From NCBI GenBank assembly GCA_002269645.1, contig NIVC01002444.1:1-64000 (forward strand): DNA of 64,000 nt. Direction: 5' to 3'. This document shows positions 1,703 to 63,435 of the stretch, piece after piece. The notes under the pieces are model-generated. The model worked only from the letters and a program-made list of their open reading frames with translations, searched no databases and had not been told where the DNA came from. Every line of letters begins with the position of its first letter. The first letter of the stretch is position 1. Source of the DNA: Macrostomum lignano. Lineage: Eukaryota. The position numbers were made by a program, and so were the translations under genes.

Positions 1703-1708
1703 TTTATT
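1703..1708 (-). terminator. Candidate polyadenylation signal (AATAAA, minus strand) for the Cys-rich peptide gene
   Basis: tttatt on the plus strand about 110 nt downstream of the TAG at 1816-1818, in AT-rich sequence. Confidence 0.5.
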
Positions 1709-1815
1709 TGTTTAATAAATAAGCCATGGACTATTAGTCTCTGACCATTTTTTTCGGATGTCTCCTTTTGTCTATTTAATTTTATCATTTTGTCAGTCTA
1801 TCGTAGACATTCGCC

Positions 1816-2047
1816 CTAAGGATGCCTCCGACCCACGTGCCTGCCCAGCACGCACAGCCGGTTCACCGTGACGTCGTCAACCGGGCGACAGGTGTGCCTG
1901 GCTGCCTGGCAGCAGTCCAGGTGGCTCACGCAGTTGACACCGTGCGGGGCGCAGCACCGCTTTCTCCTCTGGTTGCAATAGAGGTAGCTGCCGCACTCGA
2001 TATCCGACTGACAGTTAAGGTTCAGGTACTGCAGCTGCATCTGCCGC
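1816..2047 (-). CDS. Exon 2 of a secreted cysteine-rich (knottin/toxin-like) prepropeptide: (K)RQMQLQYLNLNC...GRRHP*
   Basis: Acceptor catcccgcag|g at 2048/2047 (phase 2). 10 Cys in pattern C-x5-C-x5-C-x6-CC-x6-C-x5-CC-x6-C-x11-C. TAG at 1816-1818. Confidence 0.8.
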
Positions 2048-2689
2048 CTGCGGGATGCGCGTGTTGAAGGCAGAGTTTATCTTACATGTAATGTATGATA
2101 TGTGTAGTGGCAGAGCGTTGGATACTCTGGCTCAAGGCCTTTCGTGACACCGTTCCACAGCAATCACAAAGGCTCGCAGATACATCACAGACGAATGTCG
2201 AGATTGGCTCTCACAATCGTTAGTTGGTTAGTTTGATGGGTCAGTTCGACAGTCAACTCACAGCACGCTAGGAGGCAAGCAGCTACACATTTTTACTGAC
2301 ACCGGAACACGCACAACTTTCTCACATGCACACACTCTGGGCCTTAGGGGTTGGCCTTCATGGAGGTGGTGAAAAGCACGACAAGCCTCGGGTTAATTTT
2401 CGTGCAAAAGCCCCAAACTGATGTGGGTACTTCCGAGTACTGAGCTTCCCTGGTCGTTACTTAGGAAATCGAGTCCTGATTTTCTGGTACAAGCGTACTA
2501 TGGAACCAAGCGATACTGCAGCTCCATCATGAACCTTTGTTCGATTGGTCACTTTTGCGACGTCGCGGTGAGGTGTTGCTAAGGAAGGTTTATGAAGTCT
2601 CTTGTCTCCGCAGCGTGTTTTAACACAAAAAGCGTGTTTCGACCCAACAAAGGGGTTGGAGTCTGACCGGACATCAGTGAGAACGAATG

Positions 2690-2915
2690 AATTCAAGCTC
2701 CCCAGACGTGTGTGCACGCGGCTTGCTCAGCTGAGGAGCGGTTATTCTATGCTTCTCGCCAGCTACCGACACCGTCTGGACCCTTCGATCCAGGACATTT
2801 GCTCGGCCTGTGAGGCCGCCGCGCATCTGTTCTGCTCCTCAGTTAATCCATCTGATCTTGAAGTTGCCGATCTCTGGCGGCGGCGCGTGGAGGTCGCCGA
2901 ATTCCTCCGCCACGG
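2690..2915 (+). mobile_element. Degenerate 3' end of a non-LTR retrotransposon ORF2 (C-terminal Zn-knuckle region), inside the peptide gene intron
   Basis: Translation LPRRVCTRLAQLRSGYSMLLASYRHRLDPSIQDICSAC..HLFC..DLW..VAEFL matches the typical LINE C-terminal LAQLRSG...C..C...HLF.C...LW pattern. Confidence 0.65.
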
Positions 2916-2998
2916 CGACTCGGCGAACTGGGCGATGGTTACACACGCACACGCAAAACAGCTACCACATAATCAACTAGTAGTCGAAGCTCTCTTAC

Positions 2999-3135
2999 TT
3001 AACGTGCTGAGAGTCGGCGTGGGCGAGCCTGTCACTCGAGTCCAGGATGAAAATTTCATTATCGGCAGTCGCTGGTTGCACAGCAAGAACGGCCGCTGCG
3101 CCCGCCACTGCTGCAATGAAATTTGCCAGCTGCAT
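2999..3135 (-). CDS. Exon 1 of the secreted Cys-rich prepropeptide (signal peptide plus acidic propeptide)
   Basis: ATG at 3135. MQLANFIAAVAGAAAVLAVQPATA|DNEIFILDSSDRLAHADSQHV. Donor aa|gtaaga at 2999/2998 is phase 2, matching exon 2. Confidence 0.75.
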
Positions 3136-4904
3136 CTGACTGCTTATTGTCAGCTGTTGGAGACTGACGATGCTGGGAAGTATGATGATTATAATGATGA
3201 AGAGAAGCAAGGTATAGGTCTGAAATTTAATGGACTCTGCGTACCTCTGCAGCAGCGGAGTGTTGGGTGGTGGGTGTGGGGTCAGTGTACTCGTACACTA
3301 GAGACGCGGGCAGCCAGTGAAGATCACTGGGGGGGGGGGCTATCCCAGTTGCAAAGTCATGAGGAAGCAAGGCAGAAAGAGCGCAAAGCGGCATGGGAGG
3401 CTCTCAGTTGTTAATTATTTGTCTATTTTTCTCACAATCCACAAAACTGTGTATTTTAAAACTGAGACTTGATGTGACGTGAAAAAACGAATGCCACTTT
3501 TATCGCCTTTAAACAGTCAATTAGGACAACGAAAACAAAATAAAGGTGTATGGGGAAGGTCGGGTTGATTCAGACTCAAAAGTGCAAATGGATGAATGTC
3601 AGACGCAGGAGCTGGGCATTGAACTGCTCTTCAAAAAATGGACAAATAATGCATTTAGATGACAACTCTGATGTAGCAGATGGGATTAATTTGAGCATTT
3701 TGTTGGGATTCTAAAATTACACTACTTAATTTCAAATGACTCAATGCTTTAACAGATCATAAAGGTATGAGAGCAGTGAATTTCTCGAGTAATTTTAGAC
3801 GATTTACATCAATATCTAGCCTTTTGCAGAACTAAACAAAAAATAAAATTTATCAAGGGATGCGAGAATTTCACAATGATAAGAGTAGTTTATTATGACA
3901 CTGCAATTGATGGACAGAAAAATACAAGCAGAACAAGCAGACAGACAGACAGCGAGGGTGCTAAGCAGCTGCAAAAGTCAATTAAAAACAAAAATTGACC
4001 CAAAAAGATTGTAAGAGTTTGTTGCGCTGAGAATAAACTAGAAAGTTAAGAACAGTTAGGAACTTCACAATTAGGCTGGCTGACTTTTCAGAATGCGTTT
4101 GATGACAAAAACCAACGATGCGGCAAATGACACGCAGTCAAACTCCATTTATTTAAACGTATTTTAGTCTAGGGCTTATCATAAGAAAATAAAAATATTA
4201 AAATTTCAACTTAAATGTTTAACAGCAATTAGCGTTCGGAGAACCATTTCTATTTTGCAGTCACCAGTCGGAATGTATTCCCGAAACCTTGGTGAGCAAT
4301 CTGTATTCAACTCAGAGCGACGTGTCTAACTTTACATCGAGTACACTTCATCCAGACACAATGGCAATTAGCTTTGGCGATTATTTAACAGTTGCTCCTT
4401 AATGTACATTCACCCCATATACACTTTTCATTACGTGACTGGTTTTTCCACGTTTATTATCTATCCGTGCCGCCTTATCCATGCTTTTGCGTGAACTTAG
4501 TGAGAAATAATGCCGCGGAAAAGCAGTCACGTGATGAAATTTGTACATGGGGTAAATGTACATTGGGGAGCAACTGTGCAATAATGGCCAAAGTTAATAG
4601 CTAGCTATTGCGTCTGGGTGAAAGTATGTATCCGGACAATGGCATCTGTACTGGGAAAAGTGCATATAAAATGCACTTGCTTAATGTTTAGTGTGTAGCT
4701 TTGTTGAGCAATGGCTGGAAACCTGCCCTCGTATTTCGGACATTACATTACATTCGGCTATAGTAGATAGTCCTACCATTGTTTCAAATTGTTTAGCAGA
4801 GCTTCGGCGTAATAAAAGATCACTTAGAACCTTCAAATTAGACATCACGATTTACTACGGAAACTCTGCTTTGGCGCCAGTTCAAGTTCATCGTTTCTCC
4901 AAGT

Positions 4905-7674: not shown

Positions 7675-7975
7675 ACCGATAGGTCAGGAAAAGGCCCAGG
7701 CACCCCAACCAATCGGTCAGGAACATGCCCAGAGAACCCAACCAATCGGTCAGGAACATGCTCAGACACCCCAACCAATCGGTCCGGAACATGCCCAGAG
7801 AACCCAACCAATCGGTCAGGAACATGCCCAGAGAACCCAACCAATCGGTCAGGAACATGCCCAGACACCCCAACCAATCGGTCCGGAACATGCCCAGACA
7901 CCCCCACCAATCGGTCAGGAACATGCCCAGAGAACCCAACCAATCGGTCAGGAACATGCCCAGAGACCCCAACCG
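7675..7975 (+). repeat. 33-bp minisatellite (ccaaccaatcggtcaggaacatgcccagagaac), about 9 copies
   Basis: Tandem periodicity; explains the 11-aa repeats in six ORFs. Confidence 0.95.
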
Positions 7976-8024
7976 TCTGGCTTTGTCTGACTCCCAGCAT
8001 AGCAGCATTTTCGTAACAACTTAC

Positions 8025-8891
8025 CAGCGTTGGTCTGCGGTACCAGGTCTCCGTAGCCTACTGTTGTCATGGTAACCAGCGACCACCAGAAGCCGTCGAA
8101 CATGGAGGTGAAACGCGAGTCGGTGCCCTGTCTGCCACCTCCGTTGCCCCCGCCGCCACCGCCCGGGCACTTTGAACAGTCAACGGCACCTCCCTTGCCA
8201 CCGCCGCCTCCGCTGGTCGGCTCGTTGCGGGATTTCTCGCAGAAGAAGATCAACGTGCTGAACAGCAGGGTGCCCAGGGCAACAAATACTCCCATGAGCA
8301 TGAGGTCTCGGAATGAGGTGCGCAGAGTATAAATGAGCACCTGCAGGCCTCTGTAGTGCCGGCCGATTCGAAGCAGCCGCATGAACAGCGCGATCTTCAG
8401 GAAGGAGATGTACTCAGCCAGGCCGAAATCGTTACTGTCCGAGAACTCGATAATGCCAAAGAAGAACTTCAGCAGCTCGTTCACGTAGAATGGCAAAATA
8501 GACAGCATGTCGATGATAGTGTAATTGTTTTTAAAGTAGGCCAGCTTGTTCTTGCAGAAGAGCAGGCGGACGAAAAAGTCGAACGTGAGCACGCCGAAAG
8601 CAATCCAGTCTGGGAAGGTGAGCCAGTCCACCTTGATCTGCGGGTTGGCGTTCGTGTGGTTTCCGTACCAGGCCGGATGCTTGGCCGAGTAGAATGCAAT
8701 CTCGCCTGGCGACATCGGCCGCTGAAATCGATCCGAGGTGCTGGCCACGAAGCTGAACACCGTGTAAAGCACCGTGACGCTCAGGATGACGGCGTACACG
8801 GCCGCCGGGAAGCTGGACGACGGATGGTCCAGAATCTTCCAGCAGCGACGGCGCAGAGCGGCCAGGGCGTCTTTCACGCGCCGGCGCCATC
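8025..8891 (-). CDS. Shaw: Kv3/Shaw-like K+ channel exon encoding S1-S5 and pore helix/selectivity filter
   Basis: Acceptor ccgcag|ga at 8892/8891; donor g|gtaagt at 8025/8024. W.ILDHPSSS pre-S1, NNYTIIDMLSILPFY (S3), RHYRGLQVLIYTLRTS (S4-S5 linker), FWWSLVTMTTVGYGD (filter). Confidence 0.95.
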
Positions 8892-9795: not shown

Positions 9796-10240
9796 CTTGA
9801 AGGTTTGGATTTTATTTTTTTATCGGTTTTTATAGGTTTTTTGGGTTTTTATAGTTAGCGCCTGACCTGATAAAACTGGCCAACAACTGGTCTAGACAAC
9901 TGTATAATGCCTGAAGTGCTGTATACCTGTATCACCTGCCCCTGGGTTTAGTAGCAGATCGATATTACCCTCGAACTTGCCATTCACGATGCAAGGGCTC
10001 GGGCCAGACCTCACAGAGGTGTGTACATGCCAGTAGATGCAAAGGTCAGGACCTCTGTACTCTCTTCGTACGCTCGTATACATGTATGCTTCCCCCAAGG
10101 TCAGCAAAATATGAATAACTACTTGTCTCATAGGTACAACTGTCGCAATGACTTGAAGAAGCTTAACTTATTTATCTGCCACGCTATTCGGATAAGTTTA
10201 CAGCCCGAGACTGTGAAGCTGTCAACATCTCATCGCTCAC

Positions 10241-10588
10241 CGTAGCGGCAGTACCACAGCACGATCTTGAAGATGGCCGGGTCCCTGTCGAAGTAGTACT
10301 CCTGCTGAGCTGCCCTGTAGATGCCGTCGTGCAGAAGCTTATCGTAGATGTGCCGCTGCTTCAGCAGAGTCGAGCGCAGCACCTCGAACCGGGTGCCGCT
10401 GACGTTCATGCGGACCAATCCGAGCACGTCGATGCTGTCCAAGTCCAGCGACTCGCCGCACTCCATCGAGGCCTCGTCGATGAAGTGCAGATTCTCGAAG
10501 TCTGTCTTGGCCAGCTCCAGCAGCTGCAGGCGCTGCGGGTCGCTCACTGTCGAGGACGCGCGGCTGCCCTTGCGACCTCGGCGGCCGA
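10241..10588 (-). CDS. Shaw: Kv3/Shaw-like K+ channel exon, N-terminal half of the T1 domain
   Basis: Acceptor tctcttcag|tc at 10589/10588; donor g|gtgagc at 10241/10240. VRMNVSGTRFEVLRSTL...EYYFDRDPAIFKIVLWYCRYG. Confidence 0.92.
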
Positions 10589-35765: not shown

Positions 35766-37364
35766 GATCTAAAAAACTGCTCTATCAAAGATCTCATTGC
35801 TCTGCGAAGTACCTTGATGATCCCAGCCAACAGCAATTGAATAGAAGATCAATGAGCTTCACTAAAAGCCAGATAGATACAATGCTGGCACATGCACTCA
35901 ATGAAGGTGTCGAATGAAGGCGCGGCACATGATCAAGTATGTCGTTGAAGCGCATCGCCCTTGCTATTAGCTATTAGGTAAAGCCGTTGCATGGCGTTGA
36001 GAAGCCAGCACTGAGGCCGGGGCAACATCCAGTTTGGTAACTTTTTGCTTGCTGCCGATGCCTTAATAGCGGAAGCTTGGCAGCGTATGTTTGCTCGCAT
36101 CGCTGCCGCGCACACGGATGCGGCTAAACACACATCAACACACTACTGGCGCATCAACGTGTTTGTGCTGATGCATTCCATTCATTGACGGCTAGTTTCA
36201 TTATATGGGGAGGGGGAGTGGCTGATGCGGCAGGACTTTTCGCAAATTCATTGGCATTAGCCCACAGGCCACATAGCAGCCGGAACTTGAAACACGGGCG
36301 CGTCGTGTCGCCCGTCCTTTGAAATTTGTGGGGCATTTAGCTTTGAGGGAGACTGGAATGCCCCCTCCCCGCAAGCAATCGCTTATTGTATGTGTGCACA
36401 CGGAGAGAGAAGGGCTGTCCTTACCGCGAAATCGCTAATGGGATATGGTGATGAGGCTGACAGGTAAATAATACTTGCTGACATTCAGCTGCCAACTCTC
36501 TCTCCACCTGTCTCTACTATCGTTTTACTGTCCTTGTATTCGCAGTTGCTAATGCAAATTGCTATAGGTCGGAAATCGCACAGTCCCAGGGCAACAATCT
36601 ATTTTGATTTCCAATCAGTTTTTTTGGTTTGTTTTCTTTTTAATAGAAAAATCGACTAAATTTAAGTCACTCTTCAGTGTCTGAGGCTGTAGATGGGTGC
36701 CCCTCCTGCCTCTCCTGCCCAGCTGGTAATTTGCCGGCACAATGCTACTCGCTGCTGGAAACCTCTGCCTCGCTATTGGTTGGCTGTCCTAGTGGAATTG
36801 TTGTGGGGAGAAGTATTTGGGGGGAGGGAGGGAGGAGTAACAGTAAAGGCTGTAGCAAAAGAATCCAAGCTTATGCTGCTCGCAGTCTGACTGAACAAAT
36901 TTGCCTTGTTGTGTAACTTCCAATCCATTGGCCCTTGTTCTGATTTATTCCCTATTTAATTCGTTGGACTTACCATTTTTTAAGTATTGATTCTCGTCTC
37001 GTCTACTCGACTTTCAATGAAATTTGACGCATCGAGCGAGCCAGTGAAATTTCAAACGGTCTGGTCAATCATTGTTTGATTAATTGGCAACATCAATTCT
37101 AACAGGTTCAGAGGCTATTTTACCTACTCCTGCATCCTGCCCGAGTTTGGGGTAAGACAGCTGGATAATGCGAGGCAATTAATCAAAATATTGATGTAAA
37201 TTGCATAATTACGAATATTGATCGTTGCAAATATTCGTTAATTTGCTGGTTCTTGTTGCCGTGTTTCTCATGTGTGAATTGGTCATTGGTTCACTATCTA
37301 CTCAAATTAGTGTCTACTTGAGCGTATCTTTTATCTCAATGTCCACTCCATTCTATTGTCTAGG

Positions 37365-39340
37365 ATGTCCCTTGGTTCACTGTCCACTCCGGATTGTCTA
37401 TGATGTCCCTTGGTTTACTGTCCACTCCGGATTGTCTATGATGTCCCTTGGTTCACTGTCCATTCCGGATTGTCTATGATGTCCCTTGGTTCACTGTCCA
37501 CTCCATCTGATTGTCTAAAATGTCCCTTGCTTCACTGTCCGATCCATCTGGTTGTCTAGGATGTCCCTTGCTTCACTGTCCGATCCATCTGGTTGTCTAG
37601 GATGTCCCATGGTTCACTGTCCGATCCATCTGGTTGTCTAGGATGTCCCATGGTTCACTGTCCGATCCATCTGGTTGTCTAGGATGTCCCTTGCTTCACT
37701 GTCCGATCCATCTGATTGTCTAGGATGTCCCATGGTTCACTGTCCACTCCATCTGATTGTCTAAAATGTCCCTTGCTTCACTGTCCGATTCATCTGGTTG
37801 TCTAGGATGTCCCTTGCTTCACTGTCCGATCCATCTGGTTGTCTAGGATGTCCCATGGTTCACTGTCCGATCCATCTGGTTGTCTAGGATGTCCTATGGT
37901 TCACTGTCCACTCCATCTGATTGTCTAAAATGTCCCTTGCTTCACTGTCCACTCCATCTGATTGTCTAAAATGTCCCATGGTTCACTGTCCGATCCATCT
38001 GGTTGTCTAGGATGTCCCATGGTTCACTGTCCGATCCATCTGGTTGTCTAGGATGTCCCATGGTTCACTGTCCGATCCATCTGGTTGTCTAGGATGTCCC
38101 ATGGTTCACTGTCCGATCCATCTGGTTGTCTAGGATGTCCCATGGTTCACTGTCCGATCCATCTGGTTGTCTAGGATGTCCTATGGTTCACTGTCCGATC
38201 CATCTGGCTGTCTAGGATGTCCCATGGTTCACTGTCCGATCCATCTGGTTGTCTAGGATGTCCCATGGTTCACTGTCCGATCCATCTGGTTGTCTAGGAT
38301 GTCCCATGGTTCACTGTCCGATCCATCTGGTTGTCTAGGATGTCCCTTGCTTCACTGTCCGATCCATCTGATTGTCTAGGATGTCCCATGGTTCACTGTC
38401 CACTCCATCTGATTGTCTAAAATGTCCCTTGCTTCACTGTCCGATTCATCTGGTTGTCTAGGATGTCCCTTGCTTCACTGTCCGATCCATCTGGTTGTCT
38501 AGGATGTCCCATGGTTCACTGTCCGATCCATCTGGTTGTCTAGGATGTCCTATGGTTCACTGTCCACTCCATCTGATTGTCTAAAATGTCCCTTGCTTCA
38601 CTGTCCACTCCATCTGATTGTCTAAAATGTCCCATGGTTCACTGTCCGATCCATCTGGTTGTCTAGGATGTCCCATGGTTCACTGTCCGATCCATCTGGT
38701 TGTCTAGGATGTCCCATGGTTCACTGTCCGATCCATCTGGTTGTCTAGGATGTCCCATGGTTCACTGTCCGATCCATCTGGTTGTCTAGGATGTCCCATG
38801 GTTCACTGTCCGATCCATCTGGTTGTCTAGGATGTCCTATGGTTCACTGTCCGATCCATCTGGCTGTCTAGGATGTCCCATGGTTCACTGTCCGATCCAT
38901 CTGGTTGTCTAGAATGTCCCATGGTTCACTGTCCGATCCATCTGGTTGTCTAGGATGTCCCATGGTTCACTGTCCGATCCATCTGGTTGTCTAGGATGTC
39001 CCATGGTTCACTGTCCGATCCATCTGGTTGTCTAGGATGTCCCATGGTTCACTGTCCGATCCATCTGGTTGTCTAGGATGTCCTATGGTTCACTGTCCGA
39101 TCCATCTGGTTGTCTAGGATGTCCCATGGTTCACTGTCCGATCCATCTGGTTGTCTAGGATGTCCCATGGTTCACTGTCCGATCCATCTGGTTGTCTAGG
39201 ATGTCCCATGGTTCACTGTCCGATCCATCTGGCTGTCTAGGATGTCCTATGGTTCACTGTCCGATCCATCTGGCTGTCTAGGATGTCCCATGGTTCACTG
39301 TCCGATCCATCTGGTTGTCTAGGATGTCCCATGGTTCACT
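37365..39340 (+). repeat. 41-bp minisatellite (atgtcccatggttcactgtccgatccatctggttgtctagg), about 48 copies
   Basis: Period 41; older 38-bp variants at the left edge. Confidence 0.96.
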
Positions 39341-40669
39341 GCACTGTCAATAACGTTCAAATCTGTAGTTCCATTTATTATATTGCCTCAGTCGATGGCC
39401 ACTTGTGTGACTACACTTTGCAGGCTTTTAGGAGTATATTTTAATCCTCGCGAGTTTCCAATTGACTTGAGCTGCTTTGGAGTCCCTATCACAATCTCGC
39501 GCTCCCTGATACTCCGTGTGTGAGCACACAATGTTGCTGCTGGCCTCGTGTGTTTTCTTCCCCACCAAGGGCGGGAACCAATTGGTATTAGTTAATAAAT
39601 CATACTTAAAGCACTTTATATGCAGGTTTTGCGTCTGCGAAATGAGCAAAGCGACGTCTGCGCAGCAGAACCTCGACCTAAATGTAATAATATGACTTGC
39701 AGCATACCGAATCCTTATTCTGTCTGTCGCAAGCTGCTCTCTGCTCGCTACCCCCCGCCATAGACTGAAGCAAAAATCAATGAGTCCAATCCCGTCCCTG
39801 CTCAATTCTGAATCCGCAGCCGGAAGTGAACCATTCCCCGTCGCAGAAAGTCTGTGTATGTACCTAAGACCCCTGTCTGTCCTGGCTAAAGCGAGTATTG
39901 GAGCTTGAGGTTATCACATTAAACTGCTACCAGTTGAGGCCGGGGTCGGCGCTGCTGACTGAATCTGCGGCTGCTGCAGCATGGCCTAGTCCGAACTATA
40001 TTGCATCGGATTGGATAAGATAAAAGCAAAGTTTTCTCCCCTACCCCCCTGCCCGGTCCTGTTGCGCCCCTGTTAACAGGAGCTTCCAACTCCATATACT
40101 TAGTTCCTTCGCAGTGCGCGGCACAGTTTAATCTTTCGGCCTGGTAGATCGGGGGGGGGGGGCTTGAAGGGAGGCGGTGGGCAGAAAAGAAAGAAAAATG
40201 TAAGCATGATCGCCCGGGCTGGCATGGATCGTGTGTCGGCAACATCGCTTTTCAGTGTGTAGTGTATGCTGTGTGTGTGTGTGTGCACAGCGAGCAAACA
40301 GCAAAGTGGCCGGAACACACCCTATTTTGGCTGCCGCTCTTCCATCCTGCCATCCTCGATTTCCCGAATGCCAGCCTCCGCTATAGAGATCCAATCCGGC
40401 GCCTCATCATCGCCCATTCTTTGCAACTGGCAGAACCCCGTGGCATACCATGTCTTCTAAACGTCCTAAACATTCGTATCAGTAGCTAAAATATGCACGT
40501 TTGGCGAAAGACAGTTTACAACTCCTTTTAATTAAGTATTTCAACTCGATTGGTTTTTCTAATGCCAGAGTGAAAGCTGGCGATTTCGATGGTAAGATGA
40601 GTGATGTCCTGAGTTGTTGTGTTAATACTATTGTGTACTTTCATTTAAAAGTTTTGTATGAAACTTGAT

Positions 40670-41785
40670 AAAACTGCTTCATTGATCAAACTGCAACTAC
40701 TGTTTATCAAACTCCAGCTACTGTTTAAACTCCAGCTACTGTTTATCAAACTCCAGCTACTGTTTAAACTCCAGCTACTGTTTATCAAACTCCAGCTACT
40801 GTTTATCAAACTCCAGCTACTGTTTAAACTCCAGCTACTGTTTATCAAACTCCAGCTACTGTTTATCAAACTCCAGCTACTGTTTATCAAACTCCAGCTA
40901 CTGTTTATCAAACTCCAGCTACTGTTTATCAAACTCTAGCTACTGTTTATCAAACTCCAGCTACTGTTTATCAAACTCCAGCTACTGTTTATCAAACTCC
41001 AGCTACTGTTTATCAAACTCCAGCTACTGTTTATCAAACTCCAGCTACTGTTTATCAAACTCCAGCTACTGTTTATTAAACTCCGGCTACTGTTTATCAA
41101 ACTCCAGCTACTGTTTATTAAACTCCAGCTACTGTTTATCAAACTCCAGCTACTGTTTATCAAACTCCAGCTACTGTTTATCAAACTCCAGCTACTGTTT
41201 ATCAAACTCTAGCTACTGTTTATCAAACTCCAGCTACTGTTTATCAAACTCCAGCTACTGTTTAAACTCCAGCTACTGTTTATCAAACTCCAGGTACTGT
41301 TTATCAAACTCCAGCTACTGTTTATCAAACTCCAGCTACTGTTTATCAAACTCCAGCTACTGTTTATCAAACTCCAGCTACTGTTTATCAAACTCCAGCT
41401 ACTGTTTATCAAACTCCAGCTACTGTTTATCAAACTCCAGCTACTGTTTATCAAACTCCAGCTACTGTTTATCAAACTCCAGCTACTGTTTATCAAACTC
41501 CAGCTACTGTTTATCAAACTCTAGCTACTGTTTATCAAACTCCAGCTACTGTTTATCAAACTCTAGCTACTGTTTATCAAACTCCAGCTACTGTTTATCA
41601 AACTCTAGCTACTGTTTATCAAACTCCAGCTACTGTTTATCAAACTCCAGCTACTGTTTAAACTCCAGCTACTGTTTATCAAACTCCAGCTACTGTTTAT
41701 CAAACTCCAGCTACTGTTTATCAAACTCCAGCTACTGTTTATCAAACTCCAGCTACTGTTTATCAAACTCCAGCTACTGTTTATA
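40670..41785 (+). repeat. 21-bp minisatellite (aaactccagctactgtttatc), about 53 copies
   Basis: Tandem periodicity. Confidence 0.96.
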
Positions 41786-48071: not shown

Positions 48072-48370
<299 letters not shown>

Positions 48371-52154: not shown

Positions 52155-53726
52155 AGACTGGGTCATACAATAGAGACTGTCCATCTCCTGGTCATAGAGA
52201 CTGGGTCATACAATAGAGACCTCCATCTCCTGGTCATAGAGACTGGGTCATACAATAGAGGCTGTCCATCTCCTGGTTATAGAGACTGTCCATCTCCTGG
52301 CCATAGAGACTGGGTCATACAATAGAGGCTGTCCATCTCCTGGCCATAGAGACTGGGTCATACAATAGGGACTGTCCATCTCCTGGTCATAGAGACTGGG
52401 TCATACAATAGGGACTGTCCATCTCCTGGCCATAGAGACTGGGTCATACAATAGGGACTGTCCATCTCCTGGCCATAGAGACTGGGTCATACAATAGAGA
52501 CTGTCCATCTCCTGGCCATAGAGACTGGGTCATACAATAGGGACTGTCCATCTCCTGGTCATAGAGACTGGGTCATACAATAGAGGCTGTCCATCTCCTG
52601 GCCATAGAGACTGGGTCATACAAAAGGGACTGTCCATCTCCTGGTCATAGAGACTGGGTCATACAATAGGGACTGTCCATCTCCTGGCCATAGAGACTGG
52701 GTCATACAATAGAGACTGTCCATCTCCTGGCCATAGAGACTGGGTCATACAATAGAGACTGTCCATCTCCTGGTCATAGAGACTGGGTCATACAATAGAG
52801 GCTGTCCATCTCCTGGCCATAGAGACTGGGTCATACAATAGAGACTGTCCATCTCCTGGTCATAGAGACTGGGTCATACAATAGAGGCTGTCCATCTCCT
52901 GGCCATAGAGACTGGGTCATACAATAGAGGCTGTCCATCTCCTGGTCATAGAGACTGGGTCATACAATAGAGGCTGTCCATCTCCTGGTCATAGAGACTG
53001 GGTCATACAATAGAGGCTGTCCATCTCCTGGTCATAGAGACTGGGTCATACAATAGAGGCTGTCCATCTCCTGGTAATAGAGACTGGGTCATACAATAGA
53101 GACCTCCATCTCCTGGTCATAGAGACTGGGTCATACAATAGAGACTGTCCATCTCCTGGTCATAGAGACTGGGTCATACAATAGAGGCTGTCCATCTCCT
53201 GGTCATAGAGACTGGGTCATACAATAGAGACTGTCCATCTCCTGATCATAGAGACTGGGTCATACAATAGAGGCTGTCCATCTCCTGATCATAGAGACTG
53301 GGTCATACAATAGAGGCTGTCCATCTCCTGGTAATAGAGACTGGGTCATACAATAGAGACCTCCATCTCCTGGTCATAGAGACTGGGTCATACAATAGAG
53401 ACTGTCCATCTCCTGGTCATAGAGACTGGGTCATACAATAAAGGCTGTCCATCTCCTGATCATAGAGACTGGGTCATACAATAGAGGCTGTCCATCTCCT
53501 GGTAATAGAGACTGGGTCATACAATAGAGACCTCCATCTCCTGGTCATAGAGACTGGGTCATACAATAGAGACTGTCCATCTCCTGGTCATAGAGACTGG
53601 GTCATACAATAGAGGCTGTCCATCTCCTGGTCATAGAGACTGGGTCATACAATAGAGACCTCCATCTCCTGATCATAGAGACTGGGTCATACAATAGAGA
53701 CCGTCCATCTCCTGGTCATAGAGACT
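52155..53726 (+). repeat. 43-bp minisatellite (gagactgggtcatacaatagaggctgtccatctcctggtcata), about 36 copies
   Basis: Period 43. Confidence 0.96.
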
Positions 53727-55095: not shown

Positions 55096-55785
55096 TCTAA
55101 TCTACTCTATCTAATATATCAGTCAAACCCACACCTGATGCTTCGTAATCGTAACGTTTATCCCTGAACTCGACGAACCGAAACGCCCCCCCCCCTGGCG
55201 CCCCAGTCAGCGAGTTCCTGCGTGCGTGCCCGCAGCTCTCGCCCCGCTCCCCACCCGCCATTTTGATCGCGTGAACGGCTGAAATTCGAATAGCGAATCT
55301 CAGTCAGATGCCGAGGCTTCCGCTGGCCCTTTTCCTAATCTCTATTCTCTCCTCCCCTTTGTTGCTGCGTTGAACTTCCTCTTCTGCCTTTTTGTTTGTG
55401 TTGTTTTTGTTGCCTAATTAATTTTGTCCCGGAGTTCGAATCTCCCGCTCTCCCGAGGCGTCAGTGTCGTGACCCGGGCCGCACTCCTCTTTATTCTGTG
55501 CACCTCTGTTCACAATGGTTCCTGCCCCGGTCTTAATTGAATTCAATTTGCTGGCTTTGGCGCCCTCACGGCACGCCATCTTGATTTGTTTCTCCTTTAT
55601 TCTCTGCTTCTTCTGACAAAGGACTGCATCATTTTGTTGTCAAACTTTTTTTTCCGGCAAAAAAGTTAGATTTTGGGCAGGAAATTTCCTAGCAATGCTG
55701 ATGACTTATAACCGATTCTTTCAGATTATTGAGATCTTTCGTAAGCTTTGCCAGTGCAATCGATTTTTTTCTTTTTTAGGGTGCG

Positions 55786-56732
55786 AAATTTCTGCTTTGT
55801 AGAAGCACTTTGCTCAAACAGTGTTCTACATAAATAAATTTCTGCTTTGTAGAAGCACTTTGCTCAAACTGTGTTCTACATAAAGAAATTTCTGCTTTGT
55901 AGAAGCACTTTGCTCAAACCGTGTTCTACATAAAGAAATTTCTGCTTTGTAGAAGCACTTTGCTCAAACAGTGTTCTACATAAAGAAATTTCTGCTTTGT
56001 AGAAGCACATTGCTCAAACTGTGTTCTACAAAAAGAAATTTCTGCTTTGTAGAAGCACATTGCTCAATTGTGTTCTACATAAAGAAATTTCTGCTTTGTA
56101 GAAGCACTTTGCTCAATTGTGTTCTACATAAAGAAATTTCTGCTTTGTAGAAGCACTTTGCTCAAACCGTGTTCTACATAAAGAAATTTCTGCTTTGTAG
56201 AAGCACTTTGCTCAAACAGTGTTCTACATAAAGAAATTTCTGCTTTGTAGAAGCACATTGCTCAAACTGTGTTCTACAAAAAGAAATTTCTGCTTTGTAG
56301 AAGCACATTGCTCAATTGTGTTCTACATAAAGAAATTTCTGCTTTGTAGAAGCACTTTGCTCAAACAGTGTTCTACATAAAGAAATTTCTGCTTTGTAGA
56401 AGCACATTGCTCAAACTGTGTTCTACAAAAAGAAATTTCTGCTTTGTAGAAGCACATTGCTCAATTGTGTTCTACATAAAGAAATTTCTGCTTTGTAGAA
56501 GCACTTTGCTCAATTGTGTTCTACATAAAGAAATTTCTGCTTTGTAGAAGCACTTTGCTCAAACCGTGTTCTACATAAAGAAATTTCTGCTTTGTAGAAG
56601 CACTTTGCTCAAACAGTGTTCTACATAAAGAAATTTCTGCTTTGTAGAAGCACTTTGCTCAATTGTGTTCTACATAAAGAAATTTCTGCTTTGTAGAAGC
56701 ACTTTGCTCAATTGTGTTCTACATAAAGAAAC
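55786..56732 (+). repeat. 49-50-bp palindromic minisatellite (aaatttctgctttgtagaagcactttgctcaaacagtgttctacataaag), about 19 copies
   Basis: Period 50 (55861 to 55911); internal inverted repeat tgtagaagcact...agtg-ttctaca. Confidence 0.95.
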
Positions 56733-58185
56733 TTCTAGTCCGTATTCTCTCCCTTATCTGCAGTTTTCAATCTCCTGCCCTTATCTCATAGGAGTTGAAT
56801 TTGTAGCAAAAGTTTTGGAAACTGCATGCAGAACCAAACTGACTGCAGTTTACTTAACACTTCGCCACTCTCTAGCGCAAGTGAAAACCATACAGCACTG
56901 TATTCACTGTATCCATGCGCAGGCGTTTTCCCACCAGCGGCACTGCAAGCTGTCTGTCTGCCGCCCTCGCGGCTTCAGCTTATATGGCCTTCTATTTTTC
57001 TCCATCCGTTCCAAGGCGCGCTTGAGAGAGGAATAATCAGAGATGAAGCCCCCCCCCCTCTCTGCGGAGCTCGGAATCGACGAAGTGGTTGGAAAGCAAT
57101 AACGCGGCTACAGTTGTTGTTGCAATAAATTTCAACACTGGTCCTGCCTCAGTGTAGGTGGTGTGGGGATGTAGGGGCGGGGGGCCAGCAATAATCAAGA
57201 TGATACGCCAGCAAAGGCGCAACTAGGATATTCGGACGATTTTCGAGCTAAATCGATTTTTTGAAAGCGTCCCTGCTGCAATGCTGCGGTCAAGTAGGGG
57301 CTGGAGAGACCGGCTTGTATGCTAGATGAAGCCTGCTCACTGCTCACCTAGGCGCAGCTCCTCCCGGCCTGTCTGTTATACAGAAGAGAGGAAAAAATCC
57401 CAAACATTACGGCTTGCTCCCGTTTTTGATTGACAGGCGCATAAAAAAGGGAAACTATGCAGAGAACTCGGTTGATATAATGACGGCAGGTGAGATGTGT
57501 TGAGGCTGGTGCACGGTGATTCCAATGATAGAAGAGCTATGGGTGAGTCTATATTGGCTGCTGTGTCGAAGACACGAGAGCCACTTTTCTGGCCTCTTCC
57601 AGTTTGTCAAGTCGAGGCATGTTCTGCGAGCGCGCGGTTCTACTCGTTCTTTCGTGTCTCTGGGAAGCTGGGGAAAAGAAAACTGTTGGGGTGGGTGGGG
57701 GTTATGGGAGAGTTGGATGCGCGACCGGAAGGCCCCTGGCAACAACAGAAGGAAGTGAGAGGAGCCATTGCAAAGTTAAGAGCAAATGAAAGAGTGAGAC
57801 AGAGAATTGAAGAAGGATGCAAGATGACGAATGCTGTGGCCACAGCTTCTTTTAGTAGATTTTCCCTTTCAATATAGATTCTACAATTCTACTCCCAGTT
57901 TGACTGACAAGTCGGGAACTGAGACGCGGCGCTTGCGGGAGAATTGCGTGACTTTCGCCGCCTCCCTCCCTGCCTCTCCGTCACTCTCAAGCCCCCCCCC
58001 CACTCAGTTCCTCTATTGTTCCTACTCGCTATCCAAACCTATTTCTTTTCCTTTGTGTTGAATTCGGGCTACAAAGAGAGTGCTAATGCGCTAATTATAG
58101 CCGCGCTAAAATGTGCCAGCGCCAAACTAGGAGGGGGGGGGGCATCATCATTAGGGCACACATACTCGAATCTCACACTGCATTT

Positions 58186-62644: not shown

Positions 62645-63435
62645 CAGCCCACAGTACTTGAGCTGCACCACACAGTACTTGATCTATACCCCACAGTACT
62701 TGATCTATACCCCACATTACTTGATCTATACCCCACATTACTTGATCTATACCCCACATTACTTGATCTATACCCCACATTACTTGACCTATACCCCACA
62801 TTACTTGATCTATACCCCACAGTACTTGATCTATACCCCACATTACTTGATCTATACCCCACAGTACTTGATCTATACCCCACATTACTTGATCTATACC
62901 ACACAGTACTTGATCTATACCCCACATTACTTGATCTATACCCCACAGTACTTGATCTATACCCCACAGTACTTGATCTATACCCCACAGTACTTGATCT
63001 ATACCCCACATTACTTGATCTAAACCCCACATTACTTGATCTATACCCCACAGTACTTGATCTATACCCCACATTACTTGATCTATACCCCACAGTACTT
63101 GATCTATACCCCACATTACTTGATCTATACCACACAGTACTTGATCTATACCCCACATTACTTGATCTATACCCCACAGTACTTGATCTATACCCCACAT
63201 TACTTGATCTATACCCCACATTACTTGATCTATACCCCACATTACTTGATCTATACCCCACATTACTTGATCTATACCCCACAGTACTTGATCTATACCC
63301 CACAGTACTTGATCTATACCCCACAGTACTTGATCTATACCCCACAGTACTTGATCTATACCCCACAGTACTTGATCTATACCCCACAGTACTTGATCTA
63401 TACCCCACAGTACTTGATCTATACCCCACAGTACT
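62645..63435 (+). repeat. 21-bp minisatellite (cagtacttgatctatacccca), about 37 copies
   Basis: Tandem periodicity. Confidence 0.96.

Follow-up and report, generated by a model that had tools for sequence, protein, structure and literature searches.

The reverse strand of a 64,000-nucleotide stretch of the genome of the flatworm Macrostomum lignano (assembly GCA_002269645.1, contig NIVC01002444.1, positions 1 to 64,000; the whole stretch is called the window below) carries, from position 3135 to 1816, a gene of two exons for a precursor protein of 122 residues with ten cysteines in its C-terminal domain. It is very likely that this is a real gene for a secreted, cysteine-rich propeptide. The best overall explanation, to which a probability of about 0.55 is given, is that of a two-exon prepropeptide gene, the mature product of which would be an extracellular ligand for an endogenous target. 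The locus is more than a chance arrangement of open reading frames (ORFs) because an identical protein is present in the public databases, because three homologues from other sources align at all ten cysteines, and because the base composition follows the proposed exons. The GC content at third codon positions is 0.75 in the coding sequence (CDS), compared to 0.76 in the exon of an adjacent potassium channel gene, and the overall GC content is 0.56-0.63 in the exons and 0.43-0.46 in the flanks.

Gene structure and splice junction

Joining positions 3135-2999 to 2047-1816, as the first-pass annotation had proposed, gives exactly the expected in-frame product of 122 residues, and both ends of the intron are in phase 2. 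The joined CDS is 369 nt long and consists of 122 codons followed by a TAG stop codon at 1818-1816. The gene and its predicted product are made up of the following parts.

3220..3225, reverse strand: candidate trans-splice acceptor TTTCAG, 84 nt 5' of the ATG, in the same frame (a motif match, tentative)
3135-2999, reverse strand: exon 1, 137 nt
3064..3135, reverse strand: start codon (the first in-frame ATG of the exon 1 ORF) and predicted signal peptide, residues 1-24 (MQLANFIAAVAGAAAVLAVQPATA)
2999..3063, reverse strand: acidic propeptide, residues 25-45 (DNEIFILDSSDRLAHADSQHV), from the translation, and the bases AA of the Lys46 codon
2048..2998, reverse strand: phase-2 GT-AG intron, 951 nt, GTAAGA...CCCGCAG
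2047-1816, reverse strand: exon 2, 232 nt
2044..2047, reverse strand: predicted dibasic K-R processing site (third base of the Lys46 codon and the Arg47 codon), made by splicing
1834..2043, reverse strand: predicted mature peptide Gln48-Val117, about 8.0 kDa, pI 8.4, comprising an N-terminal helix segment and the ten-cysteine domain
1852..2013, reverse strand: ten-cysteine domain Cys58-Cys111, which contains the motif CCAPHG
1816..1833, reverse strand: C-terminal tail G118-R-R-H-P122 and TAG, a possible amidation and dibasic trimming signal
1703..1780, reverse strand: candidate poly(A) signals, ATTAAA at 1780 and 1716 and AATAAA at 1708 (35, 99 and 107 nt past the stop codon)

The translation of exon 1 reads MQLANF...SQHV and leaves two bases, AA, in front of the donor (AA/GTAAGA). 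The acceptor is CCCGCAG/G, after which exon 2 continues as G CGG CAG ATG. The codon of Lys46 (AA+G) is thus assembled by splicing alone, and Arg47 is the first complete codon of exon 2. The earlier claim that the KR site exists only after splicing is therefore exact. The reading frame of exon 1 runs into a stop codon (AAG-TAA) that overlaps the donor. The frame of exon 2 has a stop codon 12 codons 5' of Arg47, and the acceptor is the sole AG within that stretch. Because stop codons flank both exon frames and no other AG is available, the splice junction is effectively forced. Both splice sites agree with the cis-splice motifs of M. lignano, GT[G/A]AG and CAG (PMC8629364). The poly(A) signal noticed earlier downstream of the gene is present as well, in the form of the ATTAAA and AATAAA hexamers listed above. 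As had also been noted, the ORF list shows only two fragments at the locus, 1816-2040 and 2995-3210.

The region in front of the start codon has features of its own. Two candidate spliced-leader acceptors, CTGCAG and TTTCAG, are found at 3219-3251 on the reverse strand. The exon would begin at 3246 and 3219, respectively, and both are in the frame of the CDS. The trans-splice acceptor motif of M. lignano is [T/C]TNCAG (PMC8629364). The spliced leader of this species ends in ATG, and translation started in the leader could add 28-37 residues, including the stretch LLLFIIIIIIL. No gene for the spliced-leader RNA was found in the window. On the opposite strand, an ORF of 270 amino acids (2602-3414, forward strand) covers most of the intron and exon 1. 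It has no Pfam match and is not repeated in the window. The segment LAQLRSGYSMLLASYRHRLDPSIQDICSACE within this ORF resembles what we take to be the C-terminal tail of a non-LTR (long terminal repeat) retrotransposon ORF2, and the ORF may be a truncated retroelement lying antisense in the intron.

Public record and the somatomedin B label

Over 100% of its length, the product matches the M. lignano protein A0A1I8HBI9 of UniProt (UniRef100_A0A1I8HBI9) with 100% identity. The first-pass annotation described the gene as hidden. This does not hold, because a public model with the same 122 residues exists. What was noticed is a real two-exon gene, predicted earlier in public data without having been studied. 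No mention of A0A1I8HBI9, of run SRR3581107 or of the CCAPHG motif was found in the literature library that was searched.

The entry carries the automatic name 'SMB domain-containing protein', SMB being the somatomedin B domain. The spacing C-x5-CC-x6-C of Cys6-Cys9 does resemble the end of the SMB pattern, but an SMB domain has eight cysteines, whereas there are ten in this protein. SMB identity was rejected: the PROSITE pattern PS00524 is unmatched and no match to the Pfam family Somatomedin_B (PF01033) was obtained at E values up to 10. The name looks like the result of a weak automatic profile match and appears to be unfounded.

A four-member family

Eight matches came out of an exhaustive phmmer (HMMER) search that covered 1.84 billion cluster representatives. 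Three are small proteins with clear homology, and four are repetitive or giant proteins that were matched via low-complexity stretches. The three homologues have whole-library E values of 4e-6, 2e-4 and 2e-4, and their domains are 32-40% identical to the M. lignano protein. One of them (P0007) is protein XP_064638886.1 of the nemertean Lineus longissimus, which is labelled 'uncharacterized'. The second (P0005) is on a 2.6-kb JGI metagenome contig, and the third (P0008) comes from sequencing run SRR3581107, where a Logan contig of 1.39 kb encodes it. A profile search of a set of 5.8 billion proteins found the same four sequences and no further member, and two scans of metagenome DNA with the pattern CC[AS]PHG gave 291 pattern matches, none of which was confirmed.

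The residues that are invariant in the alignment of the four members are the ten cysteines, the Pro-His-Gly sequence (P80, H81 and G82), Arg47 and Leu54. The family signature is C-x5-C-x4/5-(F/Y)C-x6-CC(A/S)PHG(Y/V)xC-x5-CC-x5/6-C-x7/11-C. In the BLASTP alignment with the Lineus protein, the similarity begins at residue 22 and runs through the splice junction. The gene is single-copy at each locus examined, and tblastn found no paralogue within the window. Downstream of the Lineus gene, a stretch that might have been a degenerate second copy turned out to be noise. As judged by the alignment, the four proteins make up a tiny, undescribed family with a distinct ten-cysteine framework, present in a flatworm and a ribbon worm.

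Architecture of the precursor

The layout noticed earlier in M. lignano - a signal-like N terminus, an acidic propeptide, a basic site and a cysteine domain - recurs in the homologues. In M. lignano, a heuristic rule based on the h-region and an A-x-A sequence predicts a signal peptide with a hydrophobic core of 14 residues and A-x-A ahead of Asp25. The start codon coincides with that of A0A1I8HBI9. The propeptide of M. lignano has a pI (isoelectric point) of 4.3 and a net charge of -4. The family as a whole has propeptides with a pI of 4.1-4.3 and predicted mature peptides of 61-75 residues, with a pI of 8.1-9.1 and a charge of +2 to +8. On the contig of P0008, one unbroken ORF runs from a classical signal peptide (MASSRKLLMYTLVVMVMLSVSCNCARA) through a very acidic propeptide to the cysteine domain. 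This is the spliced form of the architecture proposed for M. lignano.

A phase-2 intron lies just 5' of the exon that encodes the cysteine domain in all three genomic loci, those of M. lignano, L. longissimus (locus L001) and a metagenome (locus L003). The intron is separated from the first cysteine by 12 residues in M. lignano, compared to 18 in Lineus and L003. The exon that precedes the Lineus intron ends in TCAGC/GTAAGT and the last exon starts as A ATG CGT after TTTCAG. The phase is the same as in M. lignano, but the split codon is that of Ala. The acceptor of the metagenome locus, TCTTTCAG/G (L003:2018), has the position and phase of that in Lineus, and the last exon begins with G GTT CGA. 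An acidic mini-exon (L003:712-742), which encodes ESSDSDDTF and ends in AG/GTGAGC, joins this last exon in frame. Because the mini-exon ends in AG and the last exon opens with G, the split codon would be that of Arg, which parallels Lys46 of M. lignano.

The annotated Lineus protein XP_064638886.1 is spliced after MQKVVV and has no signal peptide (L001:6001-6080, OU343001.1). Read-through of the first annotated donor gives MQKVVVVSSFIILVSLLFLFSSSEF, which resembles a signal peptide. The NCBI model is for this reason probably mis-spliced.

All four members have a basic cluster that ends in the invariant Arg (KR, RRSR, KKYR and AKR...VR), and these clusters are consistent with processing by a proprotein convertase. 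Two further features of the first-pass annotation, an N-terminal Gln that could become pyroglutamate and a C-terminal G-RR amidation signal, are not conserved. Gln directly follows the cleavage Arg in two of the four members. The G-RR signal is confined to M. lignano, in which the protein ends 11 residues beyond Cys10, whereas the homologues end in CKNPTPARG, CINPPPPN and CRAP, one of them in Gly. Since the C-terminal tail is lineage-specific, amidation may be proposed for M. lignano only. There is also an internal RRKR sequence between Cys3 and Cys4, the counterparts of which in the relatives are RRGK, AKGK and KRKQ. As the furin site is not conserved, RRKR is probably a basic loop and not a processing site.

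The ten cysteines of M. lignano are spaced as C-x5-C-x5-C-x6-CC-x6-C-x5-CC-x6-C-x11-C. The final six have the spacing of an inhibitor cystine knot (ICK), Cys78-x6-Cys85-x5-CC-x6-Cys99-x11-Cys111, which is common to all four members. The ICK spacing proposed by the first-pass annotation is thus correct for the last six cysteines, but not for the full ten-cysteine framework.

Predicted fold

The AlphaFold2 prediction from the single sequence was unusable, with a predicted local distance difference test (pLDDT) score of 43.6. When the alignment of the four sequences was supplied, the best model had a pLDDT of 79.7. This model consists of an N-terminal helix (residues 2-9) and four short β-strands, among them those of a C-terminal β-hairpin. 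Its comparison with the Protein Data Bank (PDB) by Foldseek gave a list of weak matches, most of which are ICK peptides: sea-anemone Tst2, lambda-MeuKTx-1, poecitoxin, SGTx1, hanatoxin and squash trypsin inhibitors. The target TM-scores of these peptides are 0.6-0.73 over 33-42 columns, and none of the matches is significant. Draxin, the Ascaris carboxypeptidase inhibitor and the C-terminal domain of Dkk1 are also among the weak matches. Sequence searches of the PDB with single-sequence, profile and C-terminal-half queries gave nothing significant, and the C-terminal half of the Lineus protein has a weak phmmer match to omega-atracotoxin-Hv1a (E = 0.67). Considering the model and the cysteine spacing, a C-terminal ICK-like module with a four-cysteine N-terminal extension is plausible.

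Proposed function and alternative explanations

The protein would be directed to the secretory pathway, where the signal peptide would be removed after Ala24 and an enzyme of the furin or prohormone-convertase type would cut after Lys46-Arg47. The peptide set free in this way would have about 70-75 residues (about 7-8 kDa), a mildly cationic character and five disulfides. The calculated mass is about 7,982 Da for pyroGlu48-Val117-amide and about 8,604 Da for Gln48-Pro122, each with five disulfides. The C-terminal six cysteines would fold as a knottin-like module, to which the first four cysteines would form an N-terminal extension. The mature peptide may serve as a hormone, a neuropeptide or a growth-factor-like signal, and not as a fast-evolving venom component. 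An endogenous ligand is favored because residues other than cysteine are kept across two phyla, the loci are single-copy, the structure is that of a prohormone and the cleavage Arg is conserved. A hormone-like role is slightly favored over a toxin or defense role, and the choice of signaling rather than defense or toxicity is a tentative one, somewhat short of even odds. It is a bolder and rather doubtful proposal that the CCAPHG peptide represents an ancient spiralian ligand family, a five-disulfide cousin of CCWamide and the agatoxin-like peptides (ALPs) that has their diagnostic phase-2 intron through the basic cleavage codon and would act on an endogenous receptor, and hence a new orphan hormone.

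Several observations weigh against the ligand explanation or parts of it. The N-region of the signal-like N terminus has no positive charge. Exact-product look-ups in assembled contigs found neither the 122-residue product nor the 74-residue exon 2 ORF in the records. Only four sequences among about 15 billion belong to this very sparse family. Molluscs, annelids, planarians and parasitic flatworms yielded no member, an odd distribution for an ancient hormone. Nor does the family occur in the catalogue of Thiel et al. (PMC8557429), which comprises about 1,300 proneuropeptides from nemerteans, brachiopods and phoronids. A toxin or defense role is equally compatible with the ICK-like spacing and with the presence in two predators that secrete mucus. 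Finally, only one of the five AlphaFold2 models is confident, and every Foldseek match to the PDB has an E value of at least 0.17, with none below 0.1. The knottin of the first-pass annotation is therefore plausible as a fold, but unproven.

A toxin or defense role is the main alternative. Many of the same data can be read in terms of a defensive or predatory toxin, that is, a gland-secreted, five-disulfide, knottin-like peptide that would target ion channels of prey or of predators in the manner of spider ICK toxins or alpha-nemertides. The C-x6-C-x5-CC-xn-C-xn-C spacing of the last six cysteines, the ICK toxins that lead the Foldseek list, the resemblance of the Lineus C-terminal half to omega-atracotoxin-Hv1a, and weak Pfam matches to Conotoxin_I2 (0.016), Toxin_12 and calcine all point in this direction. 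The order of signal peptide, propeptide, basic site and cationic peptide is also found in toxin precursors. The phyletic distribution is sparse and comprises two mucus-secreting predators, of which L. longissimus secretes ICK toxins in its mucus (PMC5864730). However, every match to a knottin or toxin is non-significant, and the nemertide structure (PDB 6ENA) was returned by neither the PDB sequence searches nor Foldseek. Furthermore, there is one copy per locus with no tandem expansion, and the conservation of residues other than cysteine in two phyla would be unusual in a venom peptide. M. lignano is not known as a venomous animal. A toxin is considered unlikely. An antimicrobial or host-defense peptide, or a protease inhibitor, secreted to the mucus or gut would be in keeping with the pairing of cationic mature domains with acidic propeptides, as in many defensin-type precursors, and the Ascaris carboxypeptidase inhibitor (ten cysteines, 65 amino acids) is third in the Foldseek list, which also contains the squash trypsin inhibitors. 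These fold matches are all non-significant, though, three of the four members have a modest net charge only, and neither expansion nor the presence/absence variation typical of antimicrobial peptides is seen, as judged within the loci in hand only. Such a function is more unlikely still.

A divergent, single-domain relative of the Dickkopf N-terminal domain or of the colipase/prokineticin fold, which might modulate, e.g., Wnt/LRP signaling, would be in keeping with the ten-cysteine spacing, which presumably resembles that of the first cysteine-rich domain (CRD1) of DKK1. Two of the four members match Dickkopf_N (E = 0.17-0.94, profile positions 1-42 of 51), and Draxin and the Dkk1 C-terminal domain are within the weak Foldseek matches. 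The scores of 10-13 bits are nevertheless far under the gathering threshold of 25, the exhaustive HMMER search returned no Dkk protein, and a second, colipase-fold domain is lacking. The spiralian prokineticin-related peptides have the best hhalign score among the families tested, yet its probability is 20% and the alignment is gappy and driven by cysteines. This relationship is improbable. It is even less credible, and very nearly dismissed, that the gene is a prediction artefact or a chance pair of non-functional ORFs. The UniProt entry is a predicted model only and no transcript contig was retrieved, but different phyla have the ten cysteines and other residues in common, the phase of the intron is conserved as well, the codon bias is like that of the neighboring gene, and the splice junction is forced.

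Genomic neighborhood and significance

A neighboring gene encodes a voltage-gated potassium channel of the Kv type. Its exons at 7948-8877 and 10230-10547 are on the reverse strand, the same as that of the peptide gene, about 4.7 kb upstream of it. They match Ion_trans (2e-29), with the pore sequence TVGYGD, and BTB_2/T1 (1e-11). A forward-strand ORF of 300 amino acids at 465-1367 is convergent on the 3' end of the peptide gene. It contains about 16 tandem VSQPVPT heptapeptides (array 663-1007, 21-bp unit, 94% identity) and has no Pfam match. The window is unusually dense in minisatellites, with more than 20 distinct arrays. The periods are 11-50 bp and the copy number reaches 53. Examples are found at 37356-39341, 40685-41784, 52279-53726, 55785-56736 and 62648-63435. 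A (CT)148 run is located at 48075-48370.

If the peptide is a conserved ligand, it would be an orphan signaling molecule common to flatworms and ribbon worms and a further case in which neuropeptides and knottin toxins are linked. M. lignano is a genetically tractable model for its study, since RNA interference, in situ hybridization and transgenesis are available. If it is instead a toxin of the mucus or of a gland, it would provide a new five-disulfide scaffold relevant to peptide pharmacologists. In either case, the SMB name and the Lineus model, probably without its signal peptide, illustrate how poorly short two-exon genes for cysteine-rich proteins are annotated.

Comparison with known peptide families

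The closest parallel in gene organization is with the precursors of the CCWamide/agatoxin-like peptides (ALPs) of protostomes, orphan peptides with a phase-2 intron inside the basic cleavage codon (Thiel et al. 2021, PMC8557429). Like these, the protein described here is a short precursor in which a predicted signal peptide and a non-conserved propeptide precede a basic cleavage site and one C-terminal cysteine-rich peptide. The phase-2 intron runs through the basic cleavage codon (Lys46 here, Arg in the metagenome locus L003) and the mature peptide is in the last exon. In the Lineus homologue, however, the split codon is that of Ala and not of a basic residue. The cysteine patterns are also quite different. 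ALPs have eight cysteines with C-x-C motifs, whereas there are ten cysteines, two CC doublets and no C-x-C here. A conserved aromatic residue and a C terminus that is aromatic and amidated (e.g., W-G-R) are further features of ALPs, neither of which is present in the four proteins (...HVGRRHP, ...PARG, ...PPPPN and ...CRAP). Membership in the CCWamides could not be shown, the hhalign probability being 0.2% against 11 CCWamides from the supplement of PMC8557429, and neither could membership in CP3-r (1.3%, with an alignment built from the same supplement). In that supplement, the motif PHGY matched unrelated proteins only, and CCAPHG does not occur in the catalogue.

The prohormone 3-related peptides of nemerteans and brachiopods (Thiel et al. 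2021), which are found in L. longissimus, are likewise made from small secreted precursors with a KR or RR site followed by a cysteine-rich peptide, and contain a C-x6-C-x5-CC-xn-C-xn-C module preceded by a closely spaced pair of cysteines. They differ in having twelve cysteines in two ICK-like modules. Membership in this family could not be shown (hhalign probability 3.2%, with a local match of 16 columns only), and the alignment described above did not show membership in the prokineticin-related peptides either.

The ICK toxins, such as omega-hexatoxin-Hv1a and the alpha-nemertides, share with the present family the spacing of the last six cysteines and the predicted C-terminal β-hairpin, and constitute most of the weak Foldseek and phmmer matches. 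They lack the four extra N-terminal cysteines of the approximately 70-residue peptide described here, and there is no significant match in sequence or fold. Pfam gave sub-threshold matches only, to Dickkopf_N and toxin families. Dickkopf_N (PF04706) is the sole Pfam match of the M. lignano protein and has ten cysteines with a similar order of spacings, but the scores in the family are 10.3-12.7 bits compared to a gathering cut-off of 25. Moreover, a Dickkopf is a glycoprotein of 25-35 kDa with a C-terminal colipase-fold domain, CRD2, whereas the present protein is a small propeptide without such a domain.

Pfam, the PDB and hhalign thus gave no close match to a well-known family with the same cysteine framework, the outcome against which the first-pass annotation had cautioned. 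Its suggestion of an undescribed peptide stands insofar as no well-known family claims the protein, but the protein itself had already been predicted publicly. The gene cannot be assigned to any described family, because it lacks the eight-cysteine, C-x-C framework and the amidated aromatic end and because the hhalign and motif tests fail. Judging from its sequence, the gene would nevertheless work in the manner of a prohormone or knottin precursor.

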